Assembly (NCBI GenBank): GCA_010909165.1
Contig: VJWM01000202.1
Location: 292,271 to 356,270, forward strand
DNA: 64,000 nucleotides
Direction: 5' to 3'
Source of the DNA: Anthoceros angustus
Taxonomy: Eukaryota; Plantae; Anthocerotophyta
The position numbers were made by a program, and so were the translations under genes. The notes under the pieces were generated by a model. That model was given only the letters and a program-made list of their open reading frames with translations, was not told the origin of the DNA and searched no databases. This document shows, piece after piece, positions 620 through 62,769 of the stretch (its first letter is position 1; each line of letters starts with the position of its first letter).

Positions 620-2279
620 ATGGGTACTCGGGCACCGAATCCCACATATACCTCAGAATTAAAGGAGAAGGATCGGTTTAATGGGACCAAGTTTCCTGTC
701 TGGAAGGTCCGCATGAAAACCACCTTGATTGGCAGAGGGGTATGGGAAGTGGTAGATGGGACATATGCAAAACCTGATCCCAATGCCACCCCGCCTCGCA
801 ATATAGAAAAATGGAATCGGTTAAATTCCATAGCGCAAGATTAGTCCATGGTCTAGATGAAGTCCTCGACGATGTGGAGTACCACACCGGGAAGGAATTT
901 GGGATCAACTCGTAGCCACATATGATGTCCAAAACATGCATGCTTACAACATGCGATGGAATTCTACTCACTTCGCTTATGCGTGAAGGTGAGAGGTTGT
1001 TCCTCATGTCACAAAATTTAGGCAGCGAGCCCAAATGAAGGCTTTTGGATCCACCATCGAAGTTGAGGTAGCGACCGCTTGTTAACCTCCCCGCCACCCT
1101 CATATCAAACCTTTATCAAGAGCTTCAATGCCCCTATCCGGACTCGTAGTGTGCTCCTCCCTCCATCACGAGAGGAGATCATCGGTGCCTGCTTCGTGAA
1201 GAACAGTATTAACTCGCAGAGGACATAAAACCAAAGGTGACAAAGTCCTTGTCAGAAATTTCGGACCAGCACTGGAAGGCAAGTGGAGGTCGAGCAGATT
1301 CATCTTCCGTTCGCCTCCCCGCTGCTTAACCGGGAATTGCAATCGGTGGTGTGGCTATATTGGGCTCGTGAGTGCTGGAAGAAGGCCGGCGACCCACGTA
1401 AAGTCTCAAAGCCGACACGCTGCGCCAAGGAAAAGGGAGAAAGCCCCAAAGGCAGAAAGATTCTTACCGCTTGCCTCGCAAGCTCTTTGCATGATGTCGG
1501 ATGTTGGTACTGACTCGGTGCTACCACACACATCCGCAATGACAAGCACCTTTTTCAACTTTAACATTATGTAACATGAAAGACAAGGTGTTGCTTGGGG
1601 ATGAGCGGAGTGATACTAACTGCGAGTTGAGGGTCATGGCACTGCATTTCCTCCTTGATGATGGTTCGACCCTCGCACCCATGGTGTACTTTTGTCCCGA
1701 GATATGGCCAAGAACCTGTTGTCGTTGAGCAAACTCATGCAGCCCTGCCTATATGAGATGCGGGTTGATAGTGAGGGCTGCTTCTACAAGGTGGGCCATC
1801 CAACAATCAGGTCTTCAAGGGAGTACCGGAGCATGATCTGTACAGGCTTGCTGTATAGTGTGTTCGGCCCCTGCCTATTCTACAGAGCAGCTCTTTTGAA
1901 TTCCCGGTGGCATCTTTGTGGCATGCGCTTTAGGGCATGCTAATCGGCACAAGCTCATAGACATGTCCAAGCTTTCCGCCACCGAAACCCTTGCCATCCT
2001 TTAAGGATCTTCCGTTATGCAGTCTTGTATTCTCAAGCTGGAGCTCCTGCTCAAGAATGCACATAGAGCAACAGTCTGTGGAGTTAGTCCATGCAGATAT
2101 CTCTGGAAAAATTCACCAGCCCTCACTGGGTGGTGCCCTCTATTATCTAACAATTACAGATGACTTCAGCAGATATTCGTGGACTTATCTTATGCATCTT
2201 AAGAGTGACACTCTAGGCTATTTCCGGGAATGGTTACCTGTGGTGCAAAGGCAGTCCGGCTGTCCCTCTCAAGGTACTT
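620..2279 (+). pseudogene. copia gag-protease-integrase, 5' part (frameshifted)
   Basis: Copia gag N-terminus and integrase core motifs in broken frames; truncated at LKVL by the insertion. Confidence 0.9.
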
Positions 2280-2325
2280 CATCACAAAACTGGATAACCA
2301 TGTTTTTCATGTGGAAATCATATGG
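2280..2325 (+). repeat. Left terminal inverted repeat (~46 bp, imperfect)
   Basis: First 10 bp are identical to the right TIR; shared blocks GTTTTTCAT and CATATGG at matching offsets. Confidence 0.9.
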
Positions 2326-3121
2326 CGCCACGGCCCATGCAGTCGGCCATGGAAAAAACCATATGAAAATAATATCCTCAATGGGTAAGTATTTTTATTT
2401 TTATTTCCTACTTGTTCTATATTATTTATGTTTGAGTCCTACAAAGAGCTCATATATTACTCATGAAAGGACAATATACTCATGATATAAATTTCATTCA
2501 GTGTCTATGTAGTTTAATTATCTCAATATATAGGTGCACTTATATGAAATCTCTTATGGATCTATGAAAAATAAAATAAAAAATATTTACGTCATTAAAT
2601 TTTATGTCCTTCATACCAATCTTATATGGATATTTATGAACTAAATTTATTTTTTTAAATGATTACATATTTTTATTATATGAAAATATCTAATAATATA
2701 AAAATATGATAAGTACATCCAATAAAATTCATATGTATTTTAATACCATGTATCATGTGTAAAATAATATAAAGAACATGTAGGTAGGGTTCATGCAGTC
2801 GGCCATGAAAAAAGGGCATGAAAATCATATCCCTATCAGTTTTTGATTTATGTCATTCCTTGTAAAGTCTTTGTACCCATTTGGTTTTGAGTCCTACAAA
2901 AGAACTTGTAAAATACTCATGAAGGTGCAAGTGTCCTTCTATTTTGTGTGTCATGCTAAATGTATATACTTTCTTTATCTCAATATATATGTACATTTAT
3001 ATGGAAATCTGTATGGATTTATGTGAAAATTGATATAAGCATCATACACGAATTGATATGATTTATATATGCCTTTCACAATTCCTTTATGAATATCTAG
3101 TACCTGAGTTTTAAATTTCTT

Positions 3122-3180
3122 GTATATATACATATATGCATATATATATATATACATATATATATATCGTATATATACAT
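3122..3180. repeat. Imperfect (TA)n microsatellite
   Basis: tatatatacatatatgcatatatatatatatacatatatatatat... Confidence 0.85.
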
Positions 3181-6100
3181 AATAATTAATCTTTAGTACA
3201 AATATTATGATTAAAAATACACTATATTTATAACTTTAAAATAATTATAATCATTCAACAATTACAACATCTAGCTTTTAAGCGAATCCAAGCTAGGGCT
3301 TCTTGTGCACGATTCTCCGGCTCGGGACGAGCTATCGGGACCATGATCCCTCCCCATCAATACGAACTCACAGGTCAAATTTTTCTTGCAGGTGCGCCTA
3401 ACATATACATTCAACCCATACACTACAAAGTTGAAGAGCCCCTGCAATCAGAGATGTAAGAGGCTATCATACGGGACCGGAGACTGAAAATCACACCAAG
3501 GCAGGGTGCTCTTACCATGAGACCTGCTGTGCCAATGTGAAGGCAATACAGCCAGAACAGCCGTTGATGTGGTTTCACAGAATCATGAATTCGGTTGATA
3601 GTTCCATTGAACAGTATAGCTCCCCATAGAGGTACACAGAATGTGATAGACCGTAGCACCTGGTACCAGAGTTTTGATAGTTGGCATCCATGGTTGCACA
3701 GTGGTCCTCCCACACTGCAATTGAAGAAAACCACAAAGTTTCCGTGACATTTCCTGTAGTTGTCTCTGTCCTGACCCAACACCAAGCACCAGCCGGTCCA
3801 TACCCATTTGAGCTGCAAATGCTAATAAATTGACCACTGCACTAGGAAAGATATGAAGATCACCACTAGCCTGTCCAAACTTGAAATTGCAGTCCTTCTT
3901 GGATCACCAATGCATTAGGCCACTCCCAAATGCATCTTCCAGTGCCTGAACGGCACACAAGAGAACCTTTAGATGGTCCAGAAAACTATACAGTATGGCA
4001 GATTGTCGCAGTAACATATGTCAGTCAGTGCAGGGATGACTACACCTAGCTGACATGCCGAGAATGAACAGGAGCGTACCAACTGAAGTTCAAACCGTGG
4101 GTTTCAGGACTTCCATGTCAGCTAGATTGTCTGCAAGGTAACGCCATTCTCCATTCACAAGATGGGCAATTAATGCAAACATGGCAGCCTGATGCTTCTT
4201 CTCCATGCGACAAAGCAGGCTAAAGTCCAAGTACCTGTACCAGCTAGCTAACAGTCGATGAAAATCCAGTGTGACAAGATTCAGCACGCCTCATTTTGCC
4301 ACCTACCATCGGCACGAGATGTCGCTTTGCTTCATTCTGATCCTCAACACTAGCCTGCTGACCACTCGACGATGCCCTCTGCAATTAGTTGCATGTCCCC
4401 AGGTCGTATATATACATAATAATTAATCTTTAGTACAAATATGATTAAAAATACACTATATTTATAACTTTAAAATAATTATAATCATTCAACAATTACA
4501 ACATCTAGCTTTTAAGCGAATCAAGCTAGGGCTTCTTGTGCACGATTCTCCTGGCTCGGGACGAGCTACTCGGGACCATGATCCCTCCCCATCAATACGA
4601 ACTCACAGGTCAAATTTTTCTTGCAGGGTGCGCCTAACATATACATTCAACCCATACACTACAAAGTTGAAGAGCCCCTGCAATCAGACGGATGTAAGAG
4701 GCTATCATACGGGACCGGAGACTGAAAATCACACCAAGGCAGGGTGCTCTTACCATGAGACCACAGCTGTGCCAATGTGAAGGCAATACAGCCAGAACAG
4801 CCGTTGATGTGGTTTCACAGAATCATGAATTCGGTTGATAGTTCCATTGAACAGTATAGCTCCCCATAGAGAGGTACACAGAATGTGATAGACCGTAGCA
4901 CCTGGTACCAGAGTTTTGATAGTTGGCATCCATGGTTGCACAGTGGTCCTCCCACACTGCAATTGAAGAAAACCACAAAGTTTCCATACTTCCTGTAGTT
5001 GTCTCTGTCCTGACCCAACACCAAGCACCAGCCGGTCCATACCCATTTGAGCTGCAAATGCTAATAAATTGACCACTGCACTGGAAAGATATGAAGATCA
5101 CCACTAGCCTGTCCAAACTTGAAATTCGGCAGTCCTTCTTGGATCACCAATGCATTAGGGCCACTCCAAATGCATCTTCCAGTGCCTGAACGTGCACAAG
5201 AGAACCTTTAGATGGTCCAGAAAACTATACAGTATGGCAGATTGTCGCAGTAACATATGTCAGTCAGTGCAGGGATGACTACACCTAGCTGACATGCCGA
5301 GAATGAACAGGAGCGTACCAACTGAAGTTCAAACCGGTGGGTTTCAGGACTTCCATGTCAGCTAGATTGTCTGCAAGGTAACGCCATTCTCCATTCACAA
5401 GATGGGCAATTAATGCAAACATGGCAGCCTGATGCTTCTTCCCGTGACAAAGCAGGCTAAAGTCCAAGTACCTGTACCAGCTAGCTAACAGTCGATGAAA
5501 TCCAGTCGATGACAAGATTCAGCACGCTCTCACTTTGCCACCTACCATCGGCACGAGATGTCGCTTTGCTTCATTCTGATCCTCAACACTAGCCTGCTGA
5601 CCACTCGACGAATGCCCCTCTGCAATTAGTTGCATGTCCCCAGGTCGTATATATACATAATAATTAATCTTTAGTACAAATATTATGATTAAAAATACAC
5701 TATATTTATAACTTTAAAATAATTATAATCATTCAACAATTACAACATCTAGCTTTTAAGCGAATCCAAGCTAAGGGCTTCTTGTGCACGATTCTCCCGG
5801 CTCGGGACGAGCTACTCAGGACCATGATCCCTCCCCATCAATACGAACTCACAGGTCAAATTTTTCTTGCAGGGTGCGCCTAACATATACATTCAACCCA
5901 TACACTACAAAGTTGAAGGCCCCTGCAATCAGACGGATGTAAGAGGCTATCATACGGGACCGGAGACTGAAAATCACACCAAGGCAGGGTGCTCTTACCA
6001 TGAGACCTGCTGTGCCAATGTGAAGGCAATACAGCCAGAACAGCCGTTGATGTGGTTTCACAGAATCATGAATTCGGTTGATAGTTCCATTGAACAGTAT

Positions 6101-6894
6101 AGCTCCCCATAGAGAGGTACACAGAATGTGATAGACCGTAGCACCTGGTACCAGAGTTTTGATAGTTGGCATCCATGGTTGCACAGTGGTCCTCCCACAC
6201 TGCAATTGAAGAAAACCACAAAGTTTCCACATTTCCTGTAGTTGTCTCTGTCCTGACCCAACACCAAGCACCAGCCGGTCCATACCCATTTGAGCTGCAA
6301 ATGCTAATAAATTGACCACTGCACTGGGAAAGATATGAAGATCACCACTAGCCTGTCCAAACTTGAAATTCAGCAGTCCTTCTTGGATCACCATGCATTA
6401 GGCCACTCCCAAATGCATCTTCCAGTGCCTGAACGTGCACACAAAAGAACCTTTAGATGGTCCAGAAAACTATACAGTATGGCAGATTGTCGCAGTAACA
6501 TATGTCAGTCAGTGCAGGGATGACTACACCTAGCTGACATGCCGAGAATGAACAGGAGCGTACCAACTGAAGTTCAAACCGGTGGGTTTCAGGACTTCCA
6601 TGTCAGCTAGATTGTCTGCAAGGTAACGCCATTCTCCACTCACAAGATGGGCAATTAATGCAAACATGGCAGCCTGATGCTTTCTCCATGTGACAAAGCA
6701 GGCTGAAAGTCCAAGTACCTGTACCAGCTAGCTAACAGTCGATGAAATCCAGTGTATTATAAGATTCAGCACGCTCTCATTTTGCCACCTACCATCGGCA
6801 CGAGATGTCGCTTTGCTTCATTCTGATCCTCAACACTAGCCTGCTGACCACTCGACGAATGCCCCTCTGCAATTAGTTGCATGTCCCCAGGTCG
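3170..6894. repeat. Tandem triplication of a ~1.24-kb unit (3170-4406, 4407-5647, 5648-6894)
   Basis: Near-identical units; junction aggtcg|tatatatacataataatt repeated; copies differ mostly by 1-2 bp indels. Confidence 0.95.
5852..6294 (-). pseudogene. GCR1: Captured fragment of a GCR1-like G-protein-coupled receptor (also in the other two tandem units)
   Basis: Spliced pieces SNGYGPAGAWCWVRTETTTG | VLRSITFCVPLWGAILFNG-TINRIHDSVKPHQRLFWLYCLHIGTAGLM | GAFNFVVYGLNVYVRRTLQEKFDL resemble plant GCR1 (WCW...TFYAPLWGAILYNG...INRIHDF...FWL...GTAALMGLFNSIAYG, recalled from memory). Confidence 0.85.
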
Positions 6895-7215
6895 ATGACC
6901 TTGCACCCATTCCATAGTCAGGACCCTCTTGGTAGTCGTAGGAGGCAGGGTACGAGGAACCACGATGTACTTCAAGTGAGCACGTGCTTCCTACAAGGAA
7001 AAACCACCAATTGTGATCCAATCAACCAGAGACCAAGCAATAAAGCTGCCAGAAGGACGGCTACATGTAGCTCTGGAGCAACTGCTGCTTGGACAATCCA
7101 AAAACTTCACGAGAAAACAGTTCGATCCATACTCAAAATTCTTCCACATTTGTGGCCTCGACGTTGTAGTCAAGCTCCCATGCAGACCCCGTCCAAGCTC
7201 ATCAGCCAAACCTAA
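6345..7215 (-). pseudogene. Captured fragment of an ABC1/UbiB atypical kinase (3' part also in the other two tandem units)
   Basis: ADELGRGL-GELDYNVEATN | YIVVPRTLPPTTTKRVLTMEWVQG | YLDFSLLCRMEKKHQAAMFALIAHLVNGEW | ALEDAFG...FKFGQ with introns. The exon expected to carry HADPHPGN is absent, and DFG is DFS. Confidence 0.85.
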
Positions 7216-7331
7216 CCCTGCCGCAACAAAACCACCGCCAATTCAACAAACAGGACGAACACCAAAATGATCTTACAAAACAGAACAACAAAGCCGCACG
7301 CATCATCCTTTCAGAATGAAGCCAGTCTCGG

Positions 7332-7412
7332 CAAGTAAACTCCGTCGGACAGCACCAGCCGAAAGCGCTCCTGCGAGGTGGAATTGCTCCCGATCGCCTT
7401 GATGTCAATCAC
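7332..7412 (-). pseudogene. Captured micro-fragment of the RPA70/RPA1 N-terminal OB domain
   Basis: VIDIKAIGSNSTSQERFRLVLSDGVYL matches the RPA1 N-terminal ER(F/Y)RL(V/L)LSDG motif. Confidence 0.72.
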
Positions 7413-7849
7413 CGGTGCCGCCATCGCCGATCTTGCCGCACCTGGCCGAGATTTCTCCCTATGCTGCTACCCTTGCTGGAGTCCGACCCGGCGGCGCTCA
7501 CCGCAGCCGAGCAATATGTGTTCATACACTGAAATCTGCAATCATACAGTGTACATGGCAACGCAGCCAGCATGCCCCCCCTTCCCTCCCGCAATTCCCA
7601 AACCCCATCCCAAAGCCTACCCGGGAATCCAAATCCGTAGCAGTGAAACATCTATCACAGGCAAGTACCTTGTGATTACATTTGAAACGACCACACAACA
7701 ACCAGCATGGCACCTAGTGCCAGCAGTGGACTTGCCATCTAAACCTCCAAAAGAACATTTAGGAAGCCTTCCAGGACTGTAAAAGAACATTTAGGAAGCC
7801 TTCCAGGACTGTAAAAGAATACACGTTCAATCTGGCAGTTTATCATGTT

Positions 7850-9195
7850 TTACGATTCTACACGAATAGTGATCTTCGTTAGACTCGGCATCCAAGCGAT
7901 GATCTTTTCTTCCAGGGCATCCATATCCTCACGATGTTCTTCCATTTGTGTTGGTATGAGAGTCTTCCCCTCCATCGCCAGGTCCAACTACAAGGAAACA
8001 ACAATAACATCAGCTACTACCAGTTATCATTTAAAACAACAGGGAGGAAAGTTATCGCATAGAACTGAACAACATGGAGGCACCTTACCACATAAAACAG
8101 AAACTTTGCTTGATCCATGTTCATTTCTATGACATCGTCGGCGGAGAAGTGCATGGCTGCTCTTAAGGCAGCAATAACTGCATCTGAGCCCCAGGGGTCC
8201 AACACACCTGTATCAGCATCCAAAACTTCCCTCCAACTATCATCTGCTCTAAGATCAGCCAGTTTTTCTCTCCAATACTGCAAATTTTCGTCCTTAGCAG
8301 GTTTCGGACATTCCAGCTGCTGATAGAAGGTGGTCCTCAAAAGCTTTGTGAAAAAAGACCGCTTGCTCCTAGTGGCGTCAAGGACTTTCCTCCTTAACGC
8401 TCCTCTCCAGTTCTTATCAAACTCTGATTGGTCGCTCTCGGTTACTCCAAACGCAAGAATTAATGCTTGCTTGAGGCAAGCCTCACTTGGATAAAAAGTC
8501 TTCTCCAACATGATGTCAGTCAGAATGTTGGAAAGTACCTCAGCAAAAACCTTGTTAGTCATATACTCCGGCTTCGCTAGAGGGGAAGCCTTTAATGCTA
8601 ATTCAGCAGTTCGTTGTAAAGCTTGCATCATCGAATTCTGCTTCTTCAGCTCATCCCGCAACATTGCAATTTCAATTCGGTCAACATTTGTGGTAATTAC
8701 CTCCTTCTCCTTTGCCTTGTGATGCTTCCGACTCTCAGATCTATAACTACCATTCTCCAACGTCTCCGCATCCTTTCCGTATCTCCGAGAGAAGGAAGTT
8801 GGCCGATATGCCACCTGCTGCTTCCTTCCTCCATAAAAGACTTCTCCAGTGAAATCGTTCACTATTCTATTCGACTCTTTCAAAGGAAAGAGATCTTGCA
8901 CATGCTTTGTTTGTGAAGGAGGACTCGGATCCTTCCGAGAAGATCCAATCGGCTGAGTAAGGGGATCAGGCCGATCTTCGGCTTGCTGCTTCCTTCCTAC
9001 AGGACCGGCTTCTTTTGCAGAATTCGATGACCGTCCAACTTGTTGTTCCCTTGTTCGATTCGCATCTTTCGAGGGAGAGAGATGAACGGTCTCCGAAGCT
9101 TGCTCCTCTCCCCTGCTCGAGTCCTTCATTTTCTTGCTTGGTGGACCAGACGCAACAGGTGGCAATCCAGGCTTCCTTCGACTTCCTCTCTGCAT
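7850..9195 (-). CDS. Transposon companion gene of unknown function, 2 exons (9195-8089, 7987-7850), ~414 aa
   Basis: Long open frame; TG|GTAAGG donor and TTGTAG acceptor join in phase 0 and end at TAA. Disordered N-terminus, likely coiled coil (IEIAMLRDELKKQNSMMQALQRTAE), helical C-terminus. Confidence 0.75.
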
Positions 9196-9669
9196 ATCTG
9201 TGAAGGCGGAAAAGGACATAAGATCATTACAAGATGTAGCACGAGGACATTTACAGGAAATCAAATGTGAGACATACCGGAAAATTTATAACGCAACAAG
9301 GCGCAACACACCGGCGTCAGCTGGCGGATCAATTCGCACGAAATGATGTTCAGCCGGCTGCACGCCGCTGAACACCAACACGCTGTAGCAGATGTCCACA
9401 CGCCGTAGCAGACTGACTGCAGCTGTCCAGTCGATTGGTTAGAAACTGCGCTCAAACGCTAAGGCAGAATGGACAGGGAAACAGAAAATTGTCACGGGAA
9501 AACTTCATTAAGGTAGGGTAATGCAATTTCATGCACCCCTGCCCGAACTACCCCTGCCCCCGGCGTTGATCCTTAACAAAATAGATGTGCAAAACGAATC
9601 CACAAAGCACAAGAAAGCATACCCATGCTCCTTTTGAGAGATAACAACTTCCATTCACGAGAATGACTG

Positions 9670-9825
9670 AGAAGGTTTGCAAACCGACGCAGTCCCACAT
9701 GCCTGCCTGAGCATAAAAGGTTCCCATGAGCACAAAGGCGGAAGGGTGTTGTGGTTCCAGAGCCCTTGCGCAATTGAACATACACCTTCCCAGCTGCACA
9801 TTGTTATGTTTCCAGCAAGCATTGC
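9670..9825 (-). pseudogene. Captured PLS-PPR C-terminal E-motif fragment
   Basis: NACWKHNNVQLGRCMFNCARALEPQHPSAFVLMGTFYAQAGMWD resembles the PPR E domain (ACxxHGNVELG...YVLMSNIYAxAGxW). Confidence 0.8.
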
Positions 9826-10031
9826 TGGAAGCAGGTGCTTTTCTAAAGCAAGCAGGTGCTTTTCTAAAGCATTTCACCTTAACAATGACATCTCCGAATT
9901 GTTATACACAGCTGAGACACTTTCATGATGAATGCAAGTCAGGCCCACCAATTAACCATTGTCATGGGAACTTACAACAAACCAATCCCAATGCAGACCA
10001 AGGGTGGTAACCTAGATCAAACCTGTCCACA

Positions 10032-13000
10032 TCAAAATTTATACTTGTTTATGAACCACCTATTTCTAGCATTCCAATTTGGCACGAGGTGATGTGCCCT
10101 AAGAATGCTGGCTGTCTCCACTACTAAATATCCAGTGCATCCACGAGTAGCATCAGCCCATGCTAATTCCTTACACTTTGACAATCTACTTAATGATGAA
10201 GCTGGTAACTCCTTGTACAGTTTCACAAAAGCTAAATCAAGTTTAGAGGCTGATCTATCTTCATCTTCCACATCCAGTTGAAATAGTAGACGTAACTGCC
10301 CATACCAGGTTTGCTCTAGTTGAGCTTCTCCCTCCATTTGGATACTGACATCAGAATACCATGGCCTTCTATGGAAATTGTACGTTGCACGGAGGTACAT
10401 TGGCCAATCCCCTAATCTATCTCCAGGGCCAGCAGCAACAGCAAGAGCTCCCTTGGTCATCAACGCTCTCCCCTACAAGTACATGTTGTCACCAAAAGGA
10501 TCACTTATTATACCAGCTTGTCCTCGCAACAACAAAAATATTGCAAACTGCTGAATGTAGTAAACTATGAACAAACCTGTTGACGGGTTAAATGCCAGTC
10601 ATTGAGATAAATCTGAACTTGCGACACCAAATGTTGTTGAAGCTCAGGTTGGGCTTCAAATAAGCGGGCAACCTGCACAGGCAAGTTGACAGTTGTACTT
10701 GCTAATAGCCATTTCCATTTGATGCGTACACTATGCCCACAAAGCTTTCTTTTCCCCGTTCGCACTGCCTACAAACATTTAAACAAAAAAAGGTCAAAAC
10801 TTGGGGAAGAGTCTGCAATACGCATGTACAGAAAGCTAACTAACCGGAAGCTCAAAGCCATGCCAAGATGTTTCAGCCTCAACTTAAACTAGTACCTCAT
10901 CCAAAGGGGTGACCCTCTCAACTTTAGGCTCAAAGCCTTCCATGTTTTCTGCCTCGCTTCTTAATGCCTCCAACCGTTTATGATGTTGCACAATCTGATC
11001 AGTAAATCTTCGCCTATTGCTCGCGCGATATGGCATCTTCATGAGCATAATATGCATGTGTTCATACATATTTGCACTGTACTCCCATGGTAGCCCGGAG
11101 CGTCGAATGCAATCTGAAAAGTGTGTCATTGCATGCACTTTGACAGTATCAAAGTTTGATGCTTGAAAACCGCCCAAAATACTCTTCATGCTGGTGACAG
11201 CACTGTGACATTGACATGGCAACAGAACTATGTGATATACTCTAGGCTACCAAACTGTCATCAAAAGCCTACTAGGTAGCACAAAATTACTAATGTGATT
11301 TTGATTCAGACCTAAAAATGACATCATTGCAACACAATACAAATGCTGAACAAATATAAAGCTGCAAACTTGTACCTAGACATCTGATCCTCCATTTGTT
11401 GTAGCGTCTCTTCATTGTGCACTCCGCTTCGACAAGCTAGCTTGTACCAATCCAAAAATTTGACAATTACCTGGATAACACCAGGAGAAAAAACTCCAGG
11501 CATGCAAAGTACCAACACTTGCATGACTGCTCTGTGTTCGAAGGCAGCAAAATTTGCATTGGAGATGAAGTAACCATGGCTGTTGTTCCCTGGGATACGA
11601 AATGCTGAATATCGATGTTGAGTCTGAAGGACCCGCAATCGTTGATCCAGTACCTCAAGAGGCTTTTGCGTTAAGCACAAGCCTGCCGCAGCAACTCCTC
11701 GCAAAGCTGCAACCAGCATTTTAGCAAGTCCCAAGTCTGATTCATGGAGAATCTCAACTTGAATTGCTCGAAAGCAATTACCGAGCTCAGTGTCACCTCC
11801 ATTAAATCCTAGTAGGGCACACTGAAGGACAAGAAGTTCAGGAACCATCACAACTTGATGTAAGAAAAACACTAAACCTATCATTACTCCAGATTTGGTA
11901 CCTTAACAGGATGAACTGAAGATTCTGAGGAGAGTCGATTCGCAGCTGCTACCTGCCCAACATCAATCATCTCGGCAAGCTGATTCTGCAGAACTATCAT
12001 ACTTGCTTCGGTCCGCCATTCATGCTTCAAATCGACTCTACTCAAAAGATTTCGGGGACACAAACAAACGCTGCAAGGGAAAGCACATTTATTTGTGTCG
12101 AATGTGCAACTGACCTGCAAAAACATCACTCCTTCAATCATATATACAACATGAAAAAGAAAGTATTGCAGGCATGAAAACTGTGATCACATCAGTACTA
12201 GTAGCCAGTCTTGAGGATAATAGAATTTACTTTGCATCCTTCAGGATGATCTGCTATGTAAGAATAGAGCATAGGGAAAACCCACTGGTGACAACCAAAT
12301 GGATCCTTCAAGTGCAATCCTTTAAAACTCGCCTCCTTCAGTGGTTGCAGTATCAGCTCCAAACATTGCTGAAAAATCTCCAGTTTCTTCAATCTTGAAT
12401 TGGAAGCATGGAGAACCACAGGATCATTACTACCAATTGTTGGCAAAATCGCTAGAAGCGCATGTCCATGCTCCAAAGACCTCGTCGCACATGCAATATT
12501 GCCCAATGACATCACAAGCGGATATCCACTAGTTCTTTGATCATGTGAGAGGCTTGTAGCATCTGAGTACAAAATGATAGGTGCTATTACAGCCCCTTCA
12601 CAACCTACATGTTCCTGCACCCAGACGAAAATAAACGAATTTAATATGAGCATGCAGCATACTCATAGACTTCATAATGATCTCAAAGTACCTCCATTTT
12701 TCGCCACCACAAACCGGTTTGCGCAGTTGTGTACTCTTCAGTTCCGGAAACCTCTGGTTTCAACACAAATTCCCTCCTATTCTTTCGTGCCGAAAAGAGC
12801 TTTCCAAGAACACCAACTGGATCTCTGTACCTTAGTTTTAGGTCACTTTCTCCTGGACAAACTAGAACTTCCTTCCACTCGTATCCATCTTCTGTTTTAA
12901 CTTGGGATGTGCGGATCAACTCTTTCTCGTAAGCCTTAAACTCTTGAAAACTCCTATACCTCAATTCTTCCAATCTAAACGAAGGGTGAAATAGCATAGC

Positions 13001-13498
13001 AAACAACGAGGTAATATCCTTTTGTGATAGCCCTGCAGAGTTCCTGCAATGCCGAATAAAGTGAGCAAGATGAAAGCTAGAATCAAAATCCTTGGTCTGC
13101 CCCATCCATATGTCTTCGTTGCCAGTGCCTCCACAGCTGGTACTACCACTCCTATTGCCATCTGACTCACCTCCAGAGCTAGTACTACCACTCCTATTGC
13201 CATCTGACTCACCTCCAGAGCTCGTATTACGATGCCTACCACCATCCGACTCGCCTGTAGAGTTGCTAGTACCACCACTTCTATTGCCATCTGATTCTTG
13301 AGTATCAACCTGCATCTGATCATCTTCTGCACCTTGCCAATCATCCAAGCTTGCCCCTCGAGGAGAAGCTGGGATAGGACTGGTCCTTTGAGCAGCTTTT
13401 TGTAAACGTCGACACCTTGAATTTCTGCTCTGATGGCTGCCTAGACTTCCTCGATGGACAAATCCTGTTGCCCCACAATACTCACAATCAAATGCCAT
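10032..13498 (-). CDS. Plavaka-type DDE transposase, 7 exons, ~929 aa, apparently intact
   Basis: Exons 13498-12692, 12614-12231, 12114-11902, 11821-11376, 11202-10896, 10768-10577, 10472-10032 all have GT-AG ends and join in frame (2790 nt). Motifs: N-terminal CxxC...H zinc finger, PIILYSDAT, YPLVMSLGNI, YIADHPE, CxxCxCP, EILHESDLG, KVHAMTHF...YEHMHIMLMKMPYRASN, C-terminal RAHHLVP...WFINKY. Confidence 0.9.
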
Positions 13499-13589
13499 CT
13501 TGGATGGGCCAAGATGGATAAGCCTTAACCTTGGATGAGTGCAGGATCGGAAATGGCCCTCGTTACTGCTGTTACGGTGAGCACGTTAT

Positions 13590-13678
13590 GTCAGCAGGGG
13601 AAGCTTTTTGAGGTCGTTCAAGACCTAGAATCTTGTCAGCAGGGGAAGCTTTTTGAGGTCATTCAAGACCTAGAATCT
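13590..13678. repeat. ~44-bp tandem duplication upstream of the transposase ATG
   Basis: tgtcagcaggggaagctttttgaggtc(g/a)ttcaagacctagaatct occurs twice. Confidence 0.9.
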
Positions 13679-13699
13679 CTGGCGCAGACAGAGTCTGCC

Positions 13700-14080
13700 A
13701 TTTCCTAGTCTCTAATGTACACTGTGCTGAAACTGTGTAGCAGCTAAGAAGGATTTGGTTGTGGGGCATCGAGTTCATGATATCACTGCCAAACTTGGGC
13801 AGGAGTCGAGTGCCTTCTCGGGAACCATATCTTGCGCATGAATGCATGCGAAGGTAGGCTGCAGGAGACCATGGACGTGTTCACCAGGGTGGGCGAACCA
13901 AACGTCTTCATGTGGTTTTCCGTAATCTCTGCACATGCCAAGCACGGAAAACCGAAGGAGGCCATACAACTCTACCACGACAAGTGTATGTAGGTCCGAG
14001 GTGAAGGTGAATGGTCACGTCTTTGTAGCTGCCCTTCAGGCTTGCGCACTTGCCGCCGACTTGGAATCTGGTAGACGATG
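13700..14080 (+). pseudogene. Captured PLS-class PPR fragment
   Basis: LGNHILRMNACEGRLQETMDVF...NVFMWFSVISAHAKHGKPKEAIQLY...VKVNGHVFVAALQACALAADLESGR, frameshifted. Confidence 0.85.
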
Positions 14081-14660
14081 GTCTCCACATTCCGCCTCCT
14101 CCCGCACTTTCCATTGTGAAACCCAACCGTGAGCTATGCCGATGCAAGCGACGCCAAGCCCAGCAACAGGAGGATCGTGAAGCAAGTCCATCTCACCTTG
14201 CTCCTGCGCAGCAAAACCAGGAGTGAGAATCGTGGATCACTCCAAGCCCCACTAGAAGAAGAGAGACACAGTAGAGAGCTTCGCAAAACTTACGAGACGG
14301 ATGCAGTCGCGTGCAGCTAGGGCAGGAACGTCCGCGCAGGACACAAGCCCAGGGCACTTACTTTCGCCAGACGCTTTGATCGTGTCAATCACGTCGAATC
14401 CCAGAGCAAGTTTTGTTGGGAAGAGCGTCCTTCTCACTGTCAGCAGTATCCAGGAGGACGGAGGCATCGCACCCCTACACGAAATTGTGTGCGGCAGGCG
14501 AGACTGATTAGGATTACTGTACACGAGCATCATGCCTACAATCTGCTCGCAATCCAGACTGATTCGCCAGCGGCTCACCTGGACGAAGCAGTGGTGGAAG
14601 TGGTGCCGAATCAAAGAAGCACAGATCGTTCAGTCGGCCAGGTACGCCTTCTTCACCCCC
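14075..14660 (-). pseudogene. Captured class III peroxidase fragments with introns
   Basis: ASLIRHHFHHCFVQ | GCDASVLLD...EKDALPNK...GFDVIDTIKASGESKCPGLVSCADVPALAARDCIRL | then a signal-peptide piece ILLLLGLASLASA*LTVGFHNGKCG. Introns 14578-14475 and 14293-14204 lie at the usual peroxidase positions. Confidence 0.9.
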
Positions 14661-14930
14661 TGCCAGCAAGGGCTTGGACATGAGGCGCTTGTTCTGCATG
14701 GACAAATGGAGCAGGAGGGCCTCAATTTGACAAACAATTTTACTTTTGCTTGCCTTCTCAATGCAACCACTGGTGCCATATAGAGGGGCAGGCAGGTGCA
14801 CTCAGAGACTGTCAAAAGAGGACTGCTGGAAAATGTCGTGTTGGGCAACTGTCTGGTGGACATGTATGCCTTTTACTTGCCTTCTGAAGGCCTGTGCAAC
14901 CACTGGTGCGATACAGAGGGGCAGGAACCC
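14660..14930 (+). pseudogene. Captured PLS-class PPR fragment
   Basis: CQQGLGHEALVLHGQMEQEG...FTFACLL...RGRQVHSETVKRGLLENVVLGNCLVDMYA, with an internal partial duplication (FTCLLKACATTGAIQRGR). Confidence 0.85.
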
Positions 14931-16140
14931 CTACGATGAGGTGAGCGGGAGCCCCTTGGTAAAAATCCTTGTACGCACACCAATCTGTTAGGTGCCCTTG
15001 AACCCTCCTGCCGGAGTTCGAGAAGCGAGGAGTCATGGAGCTGAGTTTCCGGGAAGTGAGCGCGCTGCCTACAAGGAAGCTTTATAACATTACTTATCGA
15101 ATACCATATAAATTCAATATAATAAAATATAATACCTACATGTAAATCACGTCAGATTCCTATTATTTAAGTATAAAATGATAAAATAATTATTATTATA
15201 TAATTTTAATAACATCATAAATATAATATTTTTATACATATATTTATCGATATCTTATAATATTCACGTTAAACCGTGGCAAACACTCATTGCCTAGCCA
15301 TAAAAACATTAGAAGATCGATACATCCTCAATATCTATATTACATCTAGAGAAATTTGATGATCATATATATATATAGAATATCAATAATATTTATAAGA
15401 TATCTAAAAAATATAAATATAAATATAAATACTATAAATATTAATAAACAGTATACTATATACATATAAAATATTATAGGACAACATGTGTAACTTCCAT
15501 ATGAAAAATACTCTATATTAAAAATATAATCATACGTATTTTATCTTGATAATATGGATAAAATAATTGTATGAAAAAAATTATGATTACCTTATAACAA
15601 ACACGTCTCAAGAAGAATGTTATTTCATGTAAGAACCTTAAAACATCCATAGAGGTATGAACATATGGTAAATACTTGGATTAAAAAGAAAAATTTTATT
15701 AACCCTATATCAGAAAAATTATCATGTTAGTATGAACTATATGCATATACAAGCCATGTGAATTTTGATATCTTAATCTAAGAGCAAAACTTATACATCA
15801 AAATATATGCGATGTATACTTTTACACATATATAATATTCAATATACTAATATTCAGTTACTCATTGTTACTTGTGACATGCATATGGACTCCATATAAA
15901 ATGTTACTATATGTAAACTACATGATACCATCACATAATATGATATCAGACTCATATAAAACACATCATGACTTAAGAAGTGTATTTATGCATGCAATTC
16001 ATATTATCGCATACAAATGCCATATCCTATAAATATAGAGTCATTATAAAATAATCTCACATTAGAACTATAGGAAAAGTATATTATAATTATAAACTCA
16101 AATAATATGGAGATTGTATGTTTTTAATATACTGTGGATT

Positions 16141-16186
16141 CCATATGGTCACGGTATGAAAAACGTGGCCCTTCAATTTTGTGATG
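16141..16186 (-). repeat. Right terminal inverted repeat (~46 bp, imperfect)
   Basis: ccatatggtcacggtatgaaaaacgtggcccttcaattttgtgatg is the inverted counterpart of 2280-2325. Confidence 0.9.
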
Positions 16187-18495
16187 TTCGCACGGATAAT
16201 GGTACTGAGTTTGTGAACACTGCTTTCGACGCATTTCTCCAGGAGCATGGAATCCAGCCACCGATCGTGCCCTACACCCAACATGAGTTGGCGTAAAAAT
16301 CGGACTTTGCTCTCAATGACTCAGATGCTCTTGTGGGCCTAGCTTACCTCGGGACTTCGGCGAGGCCACATCGTCACCGCCACCTATATCCTCAGCAGTG
16401 CTTACCTGTCACTGGCAAGACTCCTTTTGAAGTCTTGGCGTAAGCCTAGTCTCCTTCATCTTCGGCGTTTTCGGTTCCGAGGCCTATGCTTATATCCCTG
16501 CCGAGAAGTGGAAGAAATTGGACAAGGGGGCTTTCCTCTTTCTGGTACATTAAGCTTGACCAAAACATAAGTTATATGATGCTCGCTCTCGATTACCCTT
16601 GCGTAGTGTTACTTTTATCAGGCCGTCCCAACTGTTGATTCATCCCCTCTTGGCGCTCTTGCGCTCGGAAGAGTTGGGCCGGTGGGCGACGACTCGATGT
16701 CTGTGGTATCCCCAAGATGATGAGCCTCTGCTTTGTACTGTTGTGCCACCCATGGCTCCTACCGCTCGGAGGATCTCGCATCGAGGGAAGGCAGTCAATC
16801 GAGGATGATAGCCATAATAATTCGACAATGTTGTCCCAGTGAACATCTGGATGATATTGACTTGGCCAAATCCGACTCCTCCGAACTTGCGCAACTGAGC
16901 ATGTGGCGAACCGAACACGAACTTCGCGTTCCACTAGGCACGGACCTCCTCACGAGGGATGGAAGGAGCCTCCATATGCCTCTATTGGTGGAGGACTTTT
17001 GGAGCTATAGTCGACATTTTACGGCTCTTGAGCCTCGCTCCTACAAAGAGGCCATCTCATGCAGCGGTCTCAAGTGGAAGGTGGCCGCCGAGGGCGAATA
17101 TCAATCTCTTATTAAAAAGCGAGACTTGGGTCCTCACGGATGCACCACAAGGGAAAGCCGATATCTTGTAAGTGGGTGTTCAAGCTAAAATTAAATGCAA
17201 AGGGGAAATTGCTAGATACAAAGCTAGACTTGTAGCAAGAGGCTTCACACAGGTTGAAGGCTTGGATTACCGAGACCTTCTACTGTAGTGCGAACACGAT
17301 CCATTAGGATCATACTTGCTTTACTGAGCACTTGGATCTACAAATGGGCGTGTCTGACCTTCCTCTCACGACACTTGATGAAGAGATTTATATGATGCGA
17401 CTGAGGATACCGGGACAAGCGTTATCTGGCAAAGTCCTAAAACTCACTGAAATGCATATATGGGCTAAAACAAAGTGGAAGGTATGGTATATTACCATCC
17501 ACATTTACTTACTTGAGATTGGTTTTGTTCAAAGCACGGTGACTCAGCGTATATCGCCTTAGTGAGTGTTGATTTTGTTCTTGGCCTTATGCGTGGGCGG
17601 CGTAATTCTATAACAAGCAGTCAAGGCATTAGCAGAGTTAAGGATATCTTGAGGACCCGATATGACATGAAGGATATCGGGGGCTCGGATACTGAATCTG
17701 AATACTTAGGAACGGACATGAAGGTGCAGTAATAATCCATCAACACAAGTACATAGGAGAAATCCTGCGTAAGTTTAAAATGGATCAAGCCAGCTGCGTC
17801 CACTCCATATCGGCGAGAATGAAGCTTACGATGGCGATGTCGCGATCGAGAGGAGATCAAAGACATATACGCTATTCCCTATAGGCCTGTAGGCGATCTC
17901 ATATTTATTTACAAAGCTGGACGGGCGGATATCCAATATCTTGGTTACCGTCACAGTTTACGGCGACAGGAAAAGCCCTTTGGGTTGCGATCAAGCGTGT
18001 GTTCGAGATATTTGAAAGAAAACATATGCGGGCTTATTCTCTGAGCGATGGGTAAAATGCTTACTGGAAGGATTCACGGACGTGGGCATCCGATAGTGAT
18101 TCGAAGAAAAGTCTCTCAACCTCGCTTCTTCCTCTCTTGATCAAGCTGGTCTTGTAAAAGCAAACATCCATAGCACTCTCCTCCCAGGAGGCGGTACAAA
18201 TCACTTAGATGCTTCCAAGGAGGCGGTGGGGCCTTGACTTCCTCAAGGACCTTGACCGAGCGGATGGCACCTACAAAGTTACATTGTGACAATATGCATT
18301 GTGGCAAATCCTAGATTTCATGCACGTACTAAACATATTGAAATTGACATCACTCGTCGGGGATGTGGTCGAGAGGTGGTTAAAGTGGACTACGTCCATC
18401 TGAGAGGACAACGTGCGAGACATCCTCAAAGGGCTTGCCAAAACACAAGCACTATACATCTTGAGGGTCTTGGGTTGGATTACTACGCCGCTTGA
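16187..18495 (+). pseudogene. copia integrase C-terminal part, RT and RNase H (frameshifted)
   Basis: RTDNGTEF, EPRSYKEA, KWVFKLK, YKARLVARGF, HARTKHIEID. Confidence 0.9.
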
Positions 18496-24400: not shown

Positions 24401-27400
24401 AACACTCCTCAATCAATTCCAAATTGGTGTAGGCCCATTGGCGGCCATACACCCATCCTAGTTGGATGTTCTCCTCCTCGCCTTGCGAAAATCAACCAAA
24501 TCTCGGGGTTGAGCTGCCCGCAAAGCAAGTGAATTGGGGCATCAACCTCACCTCACAGCGGTAGCGCTCCACCTTCTTTCCTTCCTCCTCTCGAGGAGCC
24601 TTTGCGGCTCCTTCCCTTGCCTTTTCCACTCGAGGCATGGTGGCGTTCCTTCAAGTGCTCAGGAAGGATTACTCTCCAATTTGAGAGCTTCAAAATTTCA
24701 CCCAACACTCTTCCTTGTTGCGGTAACACACTTCTGCGGCTGCTTAGCCACGGCAGTTTTCATGCTGCCACCTTCTCCGTTGGCCTTCCTTGAGGCGTGC
24801 CGCCACCAATTCTCCTTCAGCTCTCAATTTACCGCCGCGCTCTCTGCTCCGCCTTCTTGGCTCGCTTCACACTTCCTCTTCCGGTGGTTGGTGCGTGGTG
24901 AGCTCCTTCCTTGCTTCGGCACTCGCGCTTTCTTCCTTCACCGGTCTCCCGTCTTGCGCTCTGGGTCTCCTTTTCGATGGGCGCCGCAGCGGCTCCGCCT
25001 CGCTCGGCTTTCCTGGCGATGGCGGCTTTCCTTCTTCTGCGTCTTCGCTCCAACTCCAGCTCTCGTTCTAGCTCTTGGAAGGAGAAGCGGCGCACTTTGC
25101 CTCCTTTGGATATGCACGGCGCGCAACCCTAGATTGGTTCATCATTCCAAAATCCTAATTCTATCTAACTACCTATTTTCCTATCACCTTTCTATCCTAA
25201 TTAACTTCTACTTATATATTTATTCCCTATTGGTGAGCATATATAGTGGATATCCCCTCTATTCTAATTTCCTTTTAGCGAGATTGTCGACCTACCGTGT
25301 GATACGCGACTTACAGCATGATCGCTTCCTTCTCGACCTACGGCGTGTGTGGCGACCTACGGTGATGCCGACCTACCAACCTTTGGATGCCCTCACGCCT
25401 CGTCGGGGTCGTTTGACCCGTTCTTCTTCTGGGATATCCTCTTCATCTTCCTAACAATATCCTACAACTCCGACTTCAAGATTCTCGAAAATTTCTTGGC
25501 ATGCTCCTCTTCAATCGTTCTTAGCCAAAAAAATCAAACTTGTTTTGTCTTGCTCTTTTGGGCTGGTTGCCCAAACTTTTGCGTTCACATACTCCCCACC
25601 TCATCTGTTTGCGTCCTCGCAAACAGCGTACTCAGTGAGGTACCTTCCACCCATTGACTCGGTGGTAATTCGCCCGTGGAGTTACCGGATCCATTCTCGT
25701 ATCTGCGACCACCTCGTAAGGTCCCATCCATCTCCTAAGCTTCCTGGAAAGTCTAGGTACCGACTATCATATAGAAGAACCAAATCCCGTCCACGATAGT
25801 CTCTTGCTTCCTTAACTTCCCATCATGCGATCTTTTACGAGTTCACGAATCCATTGTGTTTCTTCTAAAGCATCCTCCCTATGCTCCTCTGCTCTATGAA
25901 GCTTCTAACCTAGCTACGACTATCCTCTCGGTCATCGTTCATCCTCCATGATCACAGGTAGGTACTTCAAATTCCACGGGCATCACGGTGACATACCATA
26001 TGTTAAATAATATGGTGTCTTCTTTGTGGTTATCTTCTCCATGATCTGTAGGCCCACAATGCGAATGCAACTTAGCATCCCAATCATACATGTGTCCGAT
26101 TACCTTGGTGAGGATTGTGCGAGCAACCCATTCGTCTTCTCCGTCAATCCATTTGCCTTTGGGGTTGTAGGAGTCGTCTTCGATCGGATGTTGAAGTAGG
26201 TGGTTAGGGACTCGGCGACCGAGTTGAGGAAATGTGTCCCCGGTCGTGACCAACTCTAAAGGACATCCATACCTCGTTATGATGTTCTCGAATAAAAATT
26301 TGGCTGCGTCGTCATCCTTCCTCGTGCTTCCACCATCTTTGTACAATAATCCGTAGCCACCAAAATGTCTTCTTAGTCCATTGCGTTGGTGGTTTGATCG
26401 GTCCTCTGATCGATTCCCCACTTCTCGAGCGGTGCTAGCGGTAAGATGTAGGTAAGAGGCCATTGTGTCGACAACGTGGGCCGTCCAACCCTCGACACGC
26501 ATCACACCTCGGTGAACTCCCACATCCTTTTGCATCGTAGCCCACGAATCCCGCATTCAAAATCTTCTTAACGGTCACCTGTAGCGAATAGTGTCCACCT
26601 GCCTCTTCGGCATGTAGCGCCTCCGTGACGAGTGAAGCTTCTTCAGCCGAGGCATCTCGGATCTTCGTCCGGCCCAAGTTTGTACAAGATGCCTTCCCTT
26701 AGGCAATAGGGTGCGGCTTTATGGAGAAAACAGCCCGCCCTTCCTGGACAACCATCCGGCATGATTCCATGCTCCGAGAATTTCGTACTTCACGCTCAAC
26801 AATATCGGCATGAACGCCCCTCGCGTTCTAATCTCCTCCTTCCGGGCATACCACGTCGCCTCCTCCTAGGACGTCCGTTAGTAGCTCCGGATGGCGTGTA
26901 TCCATCCACGGCCGCCTCCTTGCTTCCACCATCTTGTACAATAATCCGTAGCCACCAAAATGTCGCTTCTTAGTCCATTGCGTTGGTGGTTTGATCGGTC
27001 CTCTGATCGATTCCCCACTTCTCGAATGGTGCTAACGGTAAGATGTAGGTAAGAGGCCATTGTGTCGACAACGTGGGCCGTCCAACCCTCGACACGCATC
27101 ACACCTCCGAGTGAACTCCCACACATCCTTTTGCAGGAGCTTACCCCGTGCTACGAGGTGTACCCATCGGCAATCCTTCACGACAAATCGGCTTGTTGAC
27201 AAGATACTTCAACGCAAAATGGTCAACATGAACGCCCCTCGCGTTCCAATCTCCTCCTCCTAGGGCCTTCTCCTCCTCGCGGCCTCATGGCGCTGGCTTG
27301 ACCTCGCCAAGTGTGGGGCCTTCCTCGCTCAAAAGCGGTGCTCTCATGTCCGCTTTTGCTTCCTTTTGCCAACGTGGCCTCCACTTGCAGCCCTCACTGC

Positions 27401-61479: not shown

Positions 61480-62769
61480 ATTCACCGTATCTGATCTTCC
61501 GCATGCCTCGGCCACTTGGAGCTTGTCCACATTGATTCAGGGCTTTGTGGGCCCCTTCATCACTTCATGGCGGGGCTAATCACTTTAAGTGTGGATGACT
61601 CCGTTATACTTTTGCTTACCCGCTTCGTTTGAAGAGTGACTCCTTTGGTGTATTTTCCCTTGTTACTATGGCCGATCAAGCAAACTCGTAAGTCAAGTGC
61701 ATTAGATCCGACAATCTTTGGGCAACTTAACAATCACCAATGCAAGGACTTTTGTCAAGAGAGGGGGATCCTTCGGGTTCCACGGTTCCTTTACCTCCCA
61801 AGAGAATGGAGTATGAAAAAGCCAATGGTGATCTTTTGGCCATGGTGCGAGCCATGCTCAATCTGATACCTAAGTCCTTGGGCCGGTCATCTACAATGCT
61901 GCTTATATCAGAAACAGGGTGCTTTCCAAGTCCGTTACCGGCCGGACTCCTTATGAGTGTTGGCATGGGAGTAAACCCCTTATCTCTCATCTTCGTATCT
62001 TTGGATGCCCTACCTATGCCCATATCCCTTCTCAGCTTCGAGACAAGCTCTCAGCTCGTGCTCGTAAGTTGGTATTTGTGGGCTATGGCGAGGATCGCAA
62101 GGCATACAAGCTGGTGGACTTGAATACCCACACTCCGACGTATGCATGCATTGTCACCTTTGATGAGTCACGACTAGCACATCTTGGACTTGCTTCTTCG
62201 GCTCCTGGTCCTGACCCACATGGTGCTTCTACCTCCGGCTCTCGTAGCCCTCGATGGCCTGGTGACATTCACTTTGAGTTACATACTCAACCCTTCACTT
62301 TTCCTGACTCAGGTGTTCCTATTTTTGGTTCTGTTCCTACTCCGCCTTTTGGCTTCTTCACCTCAAGCCGGTCCTATTCCCATAGTTCCTACTCGAGAGG
62401 GGGAAGATGAACAAGCCATAGGGTTGACCATGGATGAACCACTGGAAAATGAGGATGACTCCTTTGGTGTTCTTGAGACTAAAGCATCAGAGACACCTAA
62501 GTCTCCATTCCCCTCCAAGCACTGACCCTGTTCCTGAGCGTAGGTATCCCTTGCGTCAGCGACAACCACATCACCTATGGAATGAAATACCCTTTGACTT
62601 GGAGTTCAATCAAGCCGGCTATATTACCAATTCTGAAGGTCACTTTGATGCTTTTAGTGCTGCTCTTTTAGAGGGAGATCCTCTCACTCTGCAGGAGGCA
62701 TACTCACGACCTGATGCAGCTAAGTGGAAGTTTGCCGTTGATGACGAATATAATTCATTTATTAAAAAC
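61480..62769 (+). mobile_element. Ty1/copia fragment 3 (integrase to start of RT), interrupted by an LTR element
   Basis: LELVHID, GRTPYECWHGSKPLISHLRIFGCPTYAHIP...FVGYGEDRKAYKL, DPLTLQEAYSRPDAAKWKFAVDDEYNSFIKN. Confidence 0.92.

Follow-up and report, generated by a model that had tools for sequence, protein, structure and literature searches.

A well-preserved, expressed PlavakaB-like DNA transposon in the hornwort Anthoceros angustus

The element and its insertion site

The stretch of DNA analysed here (the window) comprises 64,000 nucleotides of the Anthoceros angustus genome (assembly GCA_010909165.1, contig VJWM01000202.1, positions 292,271 to 356,270 of the forward strand), and all positions given below are counted from its first base. 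Positions 2280-16186 are occupied by a 13,907-base insertion with inverted repeats at both borders. The insertion carries two genes on the minus strand, one encoding a transposase and the other a companion protein, and is very probably a Plavaka-lineage DNA transposon that is structurally complete, resembles PlavakaB in its ends, lies inside a decayed copia integrase and expresses both of its genes.

The left terminal inverted repeat (TIR) occupies positions 2280-2325 on the plus strand and begins CATCACAAAA, and the right TIR occupies positions 16141-16186 on the minus strand, the last bases of the element being TTTTGTGATG. Each arm is 46 nt long, the two are 74% complementary, and together they form the longest and top-ranked inverted pair in the region. 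The positions at which the arms agree cluster in the ten outermost bases, CATCACAAAA, and in two blocks further in, TTTTTCAT and CATATGG. With both strands counted, the 64-kb window contains the 10-mer CATCACAAAA two times and no more (0.28 occurrences are expected by chance), and the two occurrences are the ends of the element, inverted with respect to each other. The original prediction, made from the sequence, had proposed imperfect TIRs of about 46 bp starting with CATCAC, and these ends bear it out.

The element is flanked by TT on the left (2278-2279) and on the right (16187-16188, placed by reading the flank and from the match to the Pfam rve profile), which is taken as its target-site duplication (TSD). 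The left flank reads ..GGTACTT up to the element, and the right flank resumes as TTCGCACGG or, at greater length, TTCGCACGGATAAT. In a profile search the left flank (1991-2279, plus strand) corresponded to rve positions 4-64 and the right flank (16189-16293, plus strand, RTDNGTEF...) to rve positions 71-94. Since the rve match is split across both flanks, the element sits within the core of a copia integrase, and since the two flanks meet the profile at positions 64 and 71, removal of the element with one TT rejoins that core as K-V-L-R-T-D-N-G-T-E-F. It had been proposed that exact restoration of the integrase frame fixes the TSD as TT. The rejoining of the core stands, but its reading frame is continuous only around the junction, because the rve match upstream is in a different frame, and a 3-bp TTC duplication (left copy at 2278-2280) with element ends ATCAC..GTGATG restores an identical empty-site sequence. 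The 2-bp TSD is the symmetric reading and is preferable, though a 3-bp TSD is equally compatible with the one copy available.

The copia element that serves as target is defective, either originally or since the insertion. Its integrase has a 1-nt frame change at about 2250-2270, a few codons ahead of the insertion site, and a stop codon at 16294-16296, shortly past the junction. A second, uninterrupted paralogous copia target site was not found within the 64-kb window.

Genes, transcripts and cargo

The transposase coding sequence (10032-13498, minus strand) consists of seven exons, located at 13498-12692, 12614-12231, 12114-11902, 11821-11376, 11202-10896, 10768-10577 and 10472-10035, with the stop codon at 10034-10032. 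The six introns are 77-173 nt long and all have GT..AG borders. Concatenation of the exon coordinates to count codons, stops and motifs gave 929 codons with no internal stop, as expected from the original prediction of a seven-exon gene that splices in frame. An 840-aa protein of the liverwort Calypogeia fissa (CAM6089392.1) is collinear with exons 1-5 and 7 in tblastn comparisons, with no frameshift, and the ends of its high-scoring segment pairs coincide with the predicted exon borders.

The transposase contains the residues D285 (in YSDAT), D390 (in ADHPE), C411-x2-C414 (in PCSVC), H640-x3-H644 (in HAMTH) and E664 (in YEHMH). The three acidic residues had been put forward as candidate catalytic residues in YSDAT, IADHPE and YEHMH. 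Alignments with liverwort, Closterium, basidiomycete and aphelid Plavaka proteins favour that assignment, as D285 with the serine that precedes it, D390, the CxxC and HxxxH pairs, E664 and the histidine of YEHMH are invariant or nearly so. The N-terminal region contains a zinc-finger-like CxxC..H motif. Within exon 1 there is an in-frame tandem repeat of about four 42-nt units (13128-13294, minus strand) that encodes a low-complexity stretch rich in Ser, Gly and Asp (Glu-Ser-Asp-Gly-Asn-Arg-Ser-Gly-rich).

Evidence for transcription comes from a public transcript-like assembly and a DNA run of the same sample, the contigs of which were aligned to positions 7800-13600. A transcript-like contig of 2748 nt spans positions 13169 to 9745 with no mismatches and no gaps, and omits exactly the six predicted introns of the transposase gene. 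The ends of the skipped segments read CT..AC on the plus strand, which is GT..AG on the strand of the transposase. Two further contigs, of 1487 and 414 nt, likewise match this copy with no mismatches; the assembly breaks at the exon 1 tandem repeat, leaving a gap at 13170-13192. The transposase transcript thus delimited (9745-13600, minus strand) has a 3' untranslated region (UTR) of about 290 nt that extends to 9745 and includes at least about 100 nt upstream of the ATG, its 5' end lying at least at 13600, the edge of the stretch compared. Contigs from the DNA run continue through introns 1, 2 and 4, and none of the joints is present in them. The transcript-like assembly is read as RNA because eight canonical GT-AG joints of intron size, six in the transposase gene and two in the companion gene, are absent from the DNA run, and this reading is safe. 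The sample that was sequenced therefore transcribes both genes and splices them correctly. This transcript evidence for six transposase introns and two companion introns, all absent from the DNA contigs as joints, is new here, and it extends the earlier view of an intact two-gene element to one that is also expressed.

The companion gene (7850-9457, minus strand) lies downstream of the transposase gene on the same strand and is covered by the 1487-nt transcript-like contig. Its transcript has exons at 9457-9278 (5' UTR), 9197-8089 and 7987 to at least 7800, separated by two GT-AG introns of 80 and 101 nt. The coding sequence begins with an ATG at 9195, ends with a stop codon at 7852-7850 and specifies 414 amino acids. 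The N-terminal half of the protein is basic and of low complexity, with KKMK- and RRK-type motifs, and the C-terminal half is predicted to be helical. All protein searches in this study were made exon by exon rather than on the spliced 929-aa or 414-aa sequences. Searched in this way, the companion matched no Pfam family, had no homologue among 5.8 billion proteins and no relative in PDB, and no open reading frame (ORF) resembling it occurs at the Calypogeia transposase locus. Its single-sequence AlphaFold model has a mean predicted local distance difference test (pLDDT) score of 42.7 and is unusable for fold comparison. Look-alikes in the ESM atlas belong to unnamed basidiomycete and streptophyte clusters; recognition was low, and they serve as a lead only. 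The companion is thus an expressed orphan.

The two genes are taken to produce separate transcripts. No contig of the transcript-like assembly bridges the transposase and companion transcripts, which leaves room for a shared precursor, and alternative splicing of one transcript was not seen in the contigs.

Contig depth is several-fold higher, and variant letters occur, at 9546-9933 between the two genes in both the RNA-like and DNA runs, and contigs have loose ends at 9622, 9685/9686 and 9821. The raised depth, the variants and the loose ends show that this segment is common to other loci that are also transcribed. At 13426-13700, just upstream of the transposase ATG, each of the two runs shows a rise in contig depth of about 7- to 30-fold, and there is a loose end at 13562. 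Here a 45-nt unit occurs twice (13589-13678), and the segment is a repeated sequence in or close to the promoter or 5' UTR of the transposase gene.

The remainder of the element consists of subterminal regions and cargo. The left subterminal region (2326-3166) is A+T-rich, with a G+C content (GC) of about 0.33 and scattered (T/C)ATATGGA-like motifs, and the right subterminal region (15000-16140) has a GC of 0.25. The (T/C)ATATGGA motifs are commoner in both subterminal regions than elsewhere, an enrichment that is only suggestive, and because these regions are so A+T-rich the motifs are not claimed as binding sites. A tandem triplication of a unit of about 1.24 kb (3167-6900) forms non-transposase cargo whose ORFs had no Pfam match. 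Its copies are 97-100% alike, which indicates that the duplication is young. Upstream of the transposase gene and before the right subterminal region are a captured PPR-repeat fragment (13832-13990, plus strand; PF01535, E 2.7e-5) and a captured fragment of a class III peroxidase gene (14255-14614, minus strand; PF00141, E 1.9e-11), which look like 'Pack'-like host-gene cargo. An element resident in the plant would fit with the plant gene fragments that it has captured, with its introns of host type and with its copia target.

Outside the element the window holds mainly remnants of retrotransposons, at 25900-28700, 33300-37400 and 61700-62800, which include gypsy-type ORFs for reverse transcriptase (RT), RNase H and integrase, a copia-type RT/RNase H and an SH3-like integrase C-terminus. 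The best database identities of the copia RNase H ORF are 52% or less and come from many taxa. No clear host gene was seen among window ORFs of at least 110 aa, and an Rfam search of the window gave no match.

Family assignment and comparison with known elements

Exon 2 by itself matches the Pfam Plavaka family (PF18759) at 87.1-91.4 bits, against a cut-off of 26.3, over profile positions 105-235 of 325, and exon 1 matches weakly, in collinear order, at profile positions 41-98. Transposase_21 (PF02992), DUF4216/4218 and Transposase_24 had no match in any of the seven exons, even at E<=10. The family proposed in the original prediction, Plavaka rather than ordinary CACTA/EnSpm, is therefore supported. 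The protein also carries the D, D, CxxC, HxxxH, E signature that has been defined for the CACTA-Mirage-Chapaev-Transib ('CMCT') DDE group, which includes Plavaka (PMC12730594).

An exhaustive HMMER search with exon 2 against 1.84 billion representative proteins gave 735 relatives, the best only 53% identical. The named relatives are all Plavaka-type and comprise the Calypogeia fissa protein, many Closterium proteins and, ranked lower, proteins of Basidiomycota (Dendrothele, Lentinus, Hygrophoropsis, Leucocoprinus, Ceratobasidium and Serendipita) and of the aphelid Amoeboaphelidium. Among the proteins fetched, exons 2 and 5 are conserved out to Basidiomycota, and exons 1, 3, 4 and 7 match Calypogeia and Closterium only. 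A metagenome scan with exon 2 gave no relative, an exact look-up of the exon 1 ORF gave no match, a word-indexed search started from the Calypogeia protein brought up nothing but that protein, and a profile of the D-D region searched against PDB gave spurious designed proteins, with no match to RAG1 or Transib.

Maximum-likelihood trees were built from the exon 2 region (126 columns) and the exon 5 region (82 columns) with matches from the Plavaka searches. In both trees the transposase adjoins the Calypogeia protein, on the side that holds all labelled Closterium proteins, and in the exon 2 tree a Joint Genome Institute (JGI) metagenome fragment joins the element and Calypogeia with a Shimodaira-Hasegawa-like approximate likelihood ratio test (SH-aLRT) value of 94. 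The branch that divides this side from all seven labelled fungal proteins has SH-aLRT values of 95 (exon 2) and 93 (exon 5). The phylogeny of homologues that had been called for thus places the element as sister to the Calypogeia Plavaka and apart from fungi, but with no EnSpm outgroup in the trees it does not bear on the place of the family within CMCT. The trees speak for descent among the streptophytes and tell against a recent origin in fungi, and the Plavaka lineage looks inherited within streptophytes rather than recently gained from fungi.

Two groups of fungal Plavaka elements have been described by Kojima (2025; PMC12730594, section 3.2.2). PlavakaA has TGT..ACA ends and 2-bp TSDs, and PlavakaB, with families in Agaricomycotina, has 5'-CATCA..TGATG-3' ends and 2- or 3-bp TSDs. 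Auricularia PlavakaB-1 starts CATCACGAAAC, and the Serpula families start CATCAG (Fig. S2 of PMC12730594). The element studied here has CATCACAAAA...TTTTGTGATG at 2280 and 16186, that is CATCAC..GTGATG, and TT/TT flanks in the one copy, and it shares the Pfam Plavaka domain with PlavakaB. It differs from fungal PlavakaB in its plant host, in a transposase that is about 34-36% identical in the D-D region and lies in the tree on the side of the streptophytes, in its six spliceosomal introns, and in that no TET/JBP gene is found, the orphan 414-aa companion and plant gene fragments being present instead.

The closest relatives are the streptophyte homologues, CAM6089392.1 and the Closterium proteins, which share 53-59% identity with the transposase in the catalytic exons. 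The Calypogeia protein is collinear with it over about 745 residues, and all of these homologues belong to the same lineage of the family. They differ in being unannotated gene models or domain matches, with neither ends nor TSD, accessory gene or expression on record. The Calypogeia locus (GCA_965154635.1, contig CBCUJL010000004.1, 10001-13613 of the extracted locus) has a multi-exon gene model of 840 aa; the 10 kb to each side of it contain no CATCA-type TIRs, and the locus is either a decayed copy or part of a larger element.

Giant Plavaka elements have been reported from red algae in a preprint on Bostrychia moritziana (10.1101/2025.02.11.637652). They resemble the present element in their large size (14-19 kb), extra genes, internal tandem repeats and Archaeplastida host, but they carry PAG1-3 (a methylase/SET gene and a ParB-like/2OG-oxygenase gene), domains that were not found here, and they dominate their genome whereas the element here is low-copy. 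EnSpm-Plavaka elements of Auxenochlorella are also in print, and the Spirogyra genome paper (PMC13519894) records Plavaka in 'streptophytes (algae and moss)'. For land plants, the searchable literature holds moss transposase-domain matches only, and one paper infers that land plants subsequently lost Plavaka. Kojima's CMCT tree has a Plavaka clade with no plant sequence (PMC12730594). A complete land-plant Plavaka with ends, TSD, gene structure or expression was not found in the searchable Plavaka literature, a search that lay outside Repbase and Dfam.

The earlier interpretation is thus partly supported, being right on family and completeness and too optimistic on novelty. The ends and TSD, thought to be possibly undescribed, fall under the published definition of PlavakaB (PMC12730594), and Plavaka has already been reported from moss and from red, green and streptophyte algae. 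The two-gene layout, also suggested as a novelty, is a description of this copy rather than a conserved architecture, the companion being an orphan.

Mobility, alternative explanations and significance

The element has a full set of cis and trans components, namely matching ends, a TSD and a DDE transposase that is open and retains every invariant residue. By analogy with DDE transposons of the clade, the transposase would recognise the CATCAC termini, probably through its N-terminal zinc-finger-like motif, excise the element and reinsert it at a staggered cut of 2 bp (possibly 3 bp), repair of which would produce the TT duplication. The companion might serve the A+T-rich subterminal regions as an accessory factor that binds DNA or regulates, a conjecture prompted by TnpA of En/Spm. 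Expression and intactness are shown for this copy, and it may have been recently active. It is conceivable, but rather unlikely, that this Plavaka of a seed-free land plant is autonomous and mobile at present, and that it is the first complete active member from an embryophyte, with ends conserved from basidiomycetes to plants and a companion that is a required TnpA analogue.

Several points weigh against the interpretation of the insertion as a complete, expressed PlavakaB-like transposon, or against parts of it. Similarity of the TIRs is only 74% past the first 10 bases, and one readable copy puts TSD length and end consensus at n=1. The label of the transcript-like assembly as RNA is a guess. 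The trees are short and lack an EnSpm outgroup, most of their rows being unlabelled, and assignment to PlavakaB was made on the termini with no labelled PlavakaA or PlavakaB proteins for comparison. The companion has no detectable relatives, which leaves a role in transposition unsupported, and neither a transposition event nor an excision footprint or insertion polymorphism was seen in this one-copy analysis.

The alternative that survives best departs from this interpretation solely in present-day mobility. The element could be an intact-looking, transcribed relic that is immobilised by divergence of its TIRs, by loss of subterminal sites after cargo capture or by silencing, a possibility to be taken seriously even though it is judged somewhat improbable. 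It would be consistent with the limited likeness of the TIR arms, with the large cargo and the 3.7-kb internal triplication between the left end and the genes, and with the DNA contigs, which show besides this copy only 90-95% relatives of parts of the element rather than many identical young copies. Decay of this kind is at odds with two open ORFs, preserved catalytic and structural invariants, splice sites that are used, terminal 10 bases that are identical and a TSD that is intact.

Recent horizontal transfer from a fungus is very unlikely. Plavaka is best known from Basidiomycota, the ends resemble those of fungal PlavakaB, and the weakly recognised atlas look-alikes of the companion are mainly basidiomycete clusters. 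However, both the exon 2 and exon 5 regions group with liverwort and Closterium sequences across a supported branch from the seven labelled fungal proteins, and exons 1, 3, 4 and 7 have relatives in Calypogeia and Closterium only. The six short spliceosomal introns, which the host splices, and the plant gene fragments aboard also speak against such a transfer.

An ordinary plant CACTA/EnSpm element of the TnpD/TnpA type with slightly unusual ends is largely refuted and hardly credible. En/Spm transposases are recognisably related to those of Plavaka, which some authors class under EnSpm, and the two systems share cut-and-paste transposition, membership of the same broad clade, short TSDs, A+T-rich subterminal regions, a transposase with a second gene on the same strand, and captured host gene fragments. 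The element lacks the Transposase_21, Transposase_24 and DUF4216/4218 domains on every exon, its ends are CATCAC rather than CACTA or CACTG, its TSD is 2 bp in the symmetric reading as against the 3 bp of EnSpm/CACTA, and its two proteins derive from separate transcript contigs. Moreover, its closest relatives are annotated as Plavaka, and angiosperm EnSpm families are distant from Plavaka in Kojima's CMCT tree (PMC12730594). Equally hard to credit is a domesticated transposase gene with no transposon around it, for although the ORF is intact, spliced and expressed and the Calypogeia homologue has no recognisable CATCA ends within 10 kb, a gene that lies between matching TIRs and a TSD, inside another transposon and beside cargo fragments, has the anatomy of a mobile element.

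The insertion belongs to the streptophyte branch of a lineage already known, within which it is a well-preserved and expressed PlavakaB-like transposon, and it is not a new kind of system. It supplies what the moss domain matches lack, which is both ends, a TSD, a transcript-confirmed exon-intron structure and an expressed accessory gene. With this copy, the streptophyte branch is seen to share the CATCA terminal motif and the short TSD with fungal PlavakaB, and their presence in both fungi and streptophytes argues that they are ancestral features of the lineage. As an intact expressed element, it offers a reference copy and a natural starting point for tests of mobility and for transposon tagging in a seed-free plant. 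If the element were mobile and autonomous, it would contradict the published loss of Plavaka from land plants and would provide a native cut-and-paste tool for such plants.

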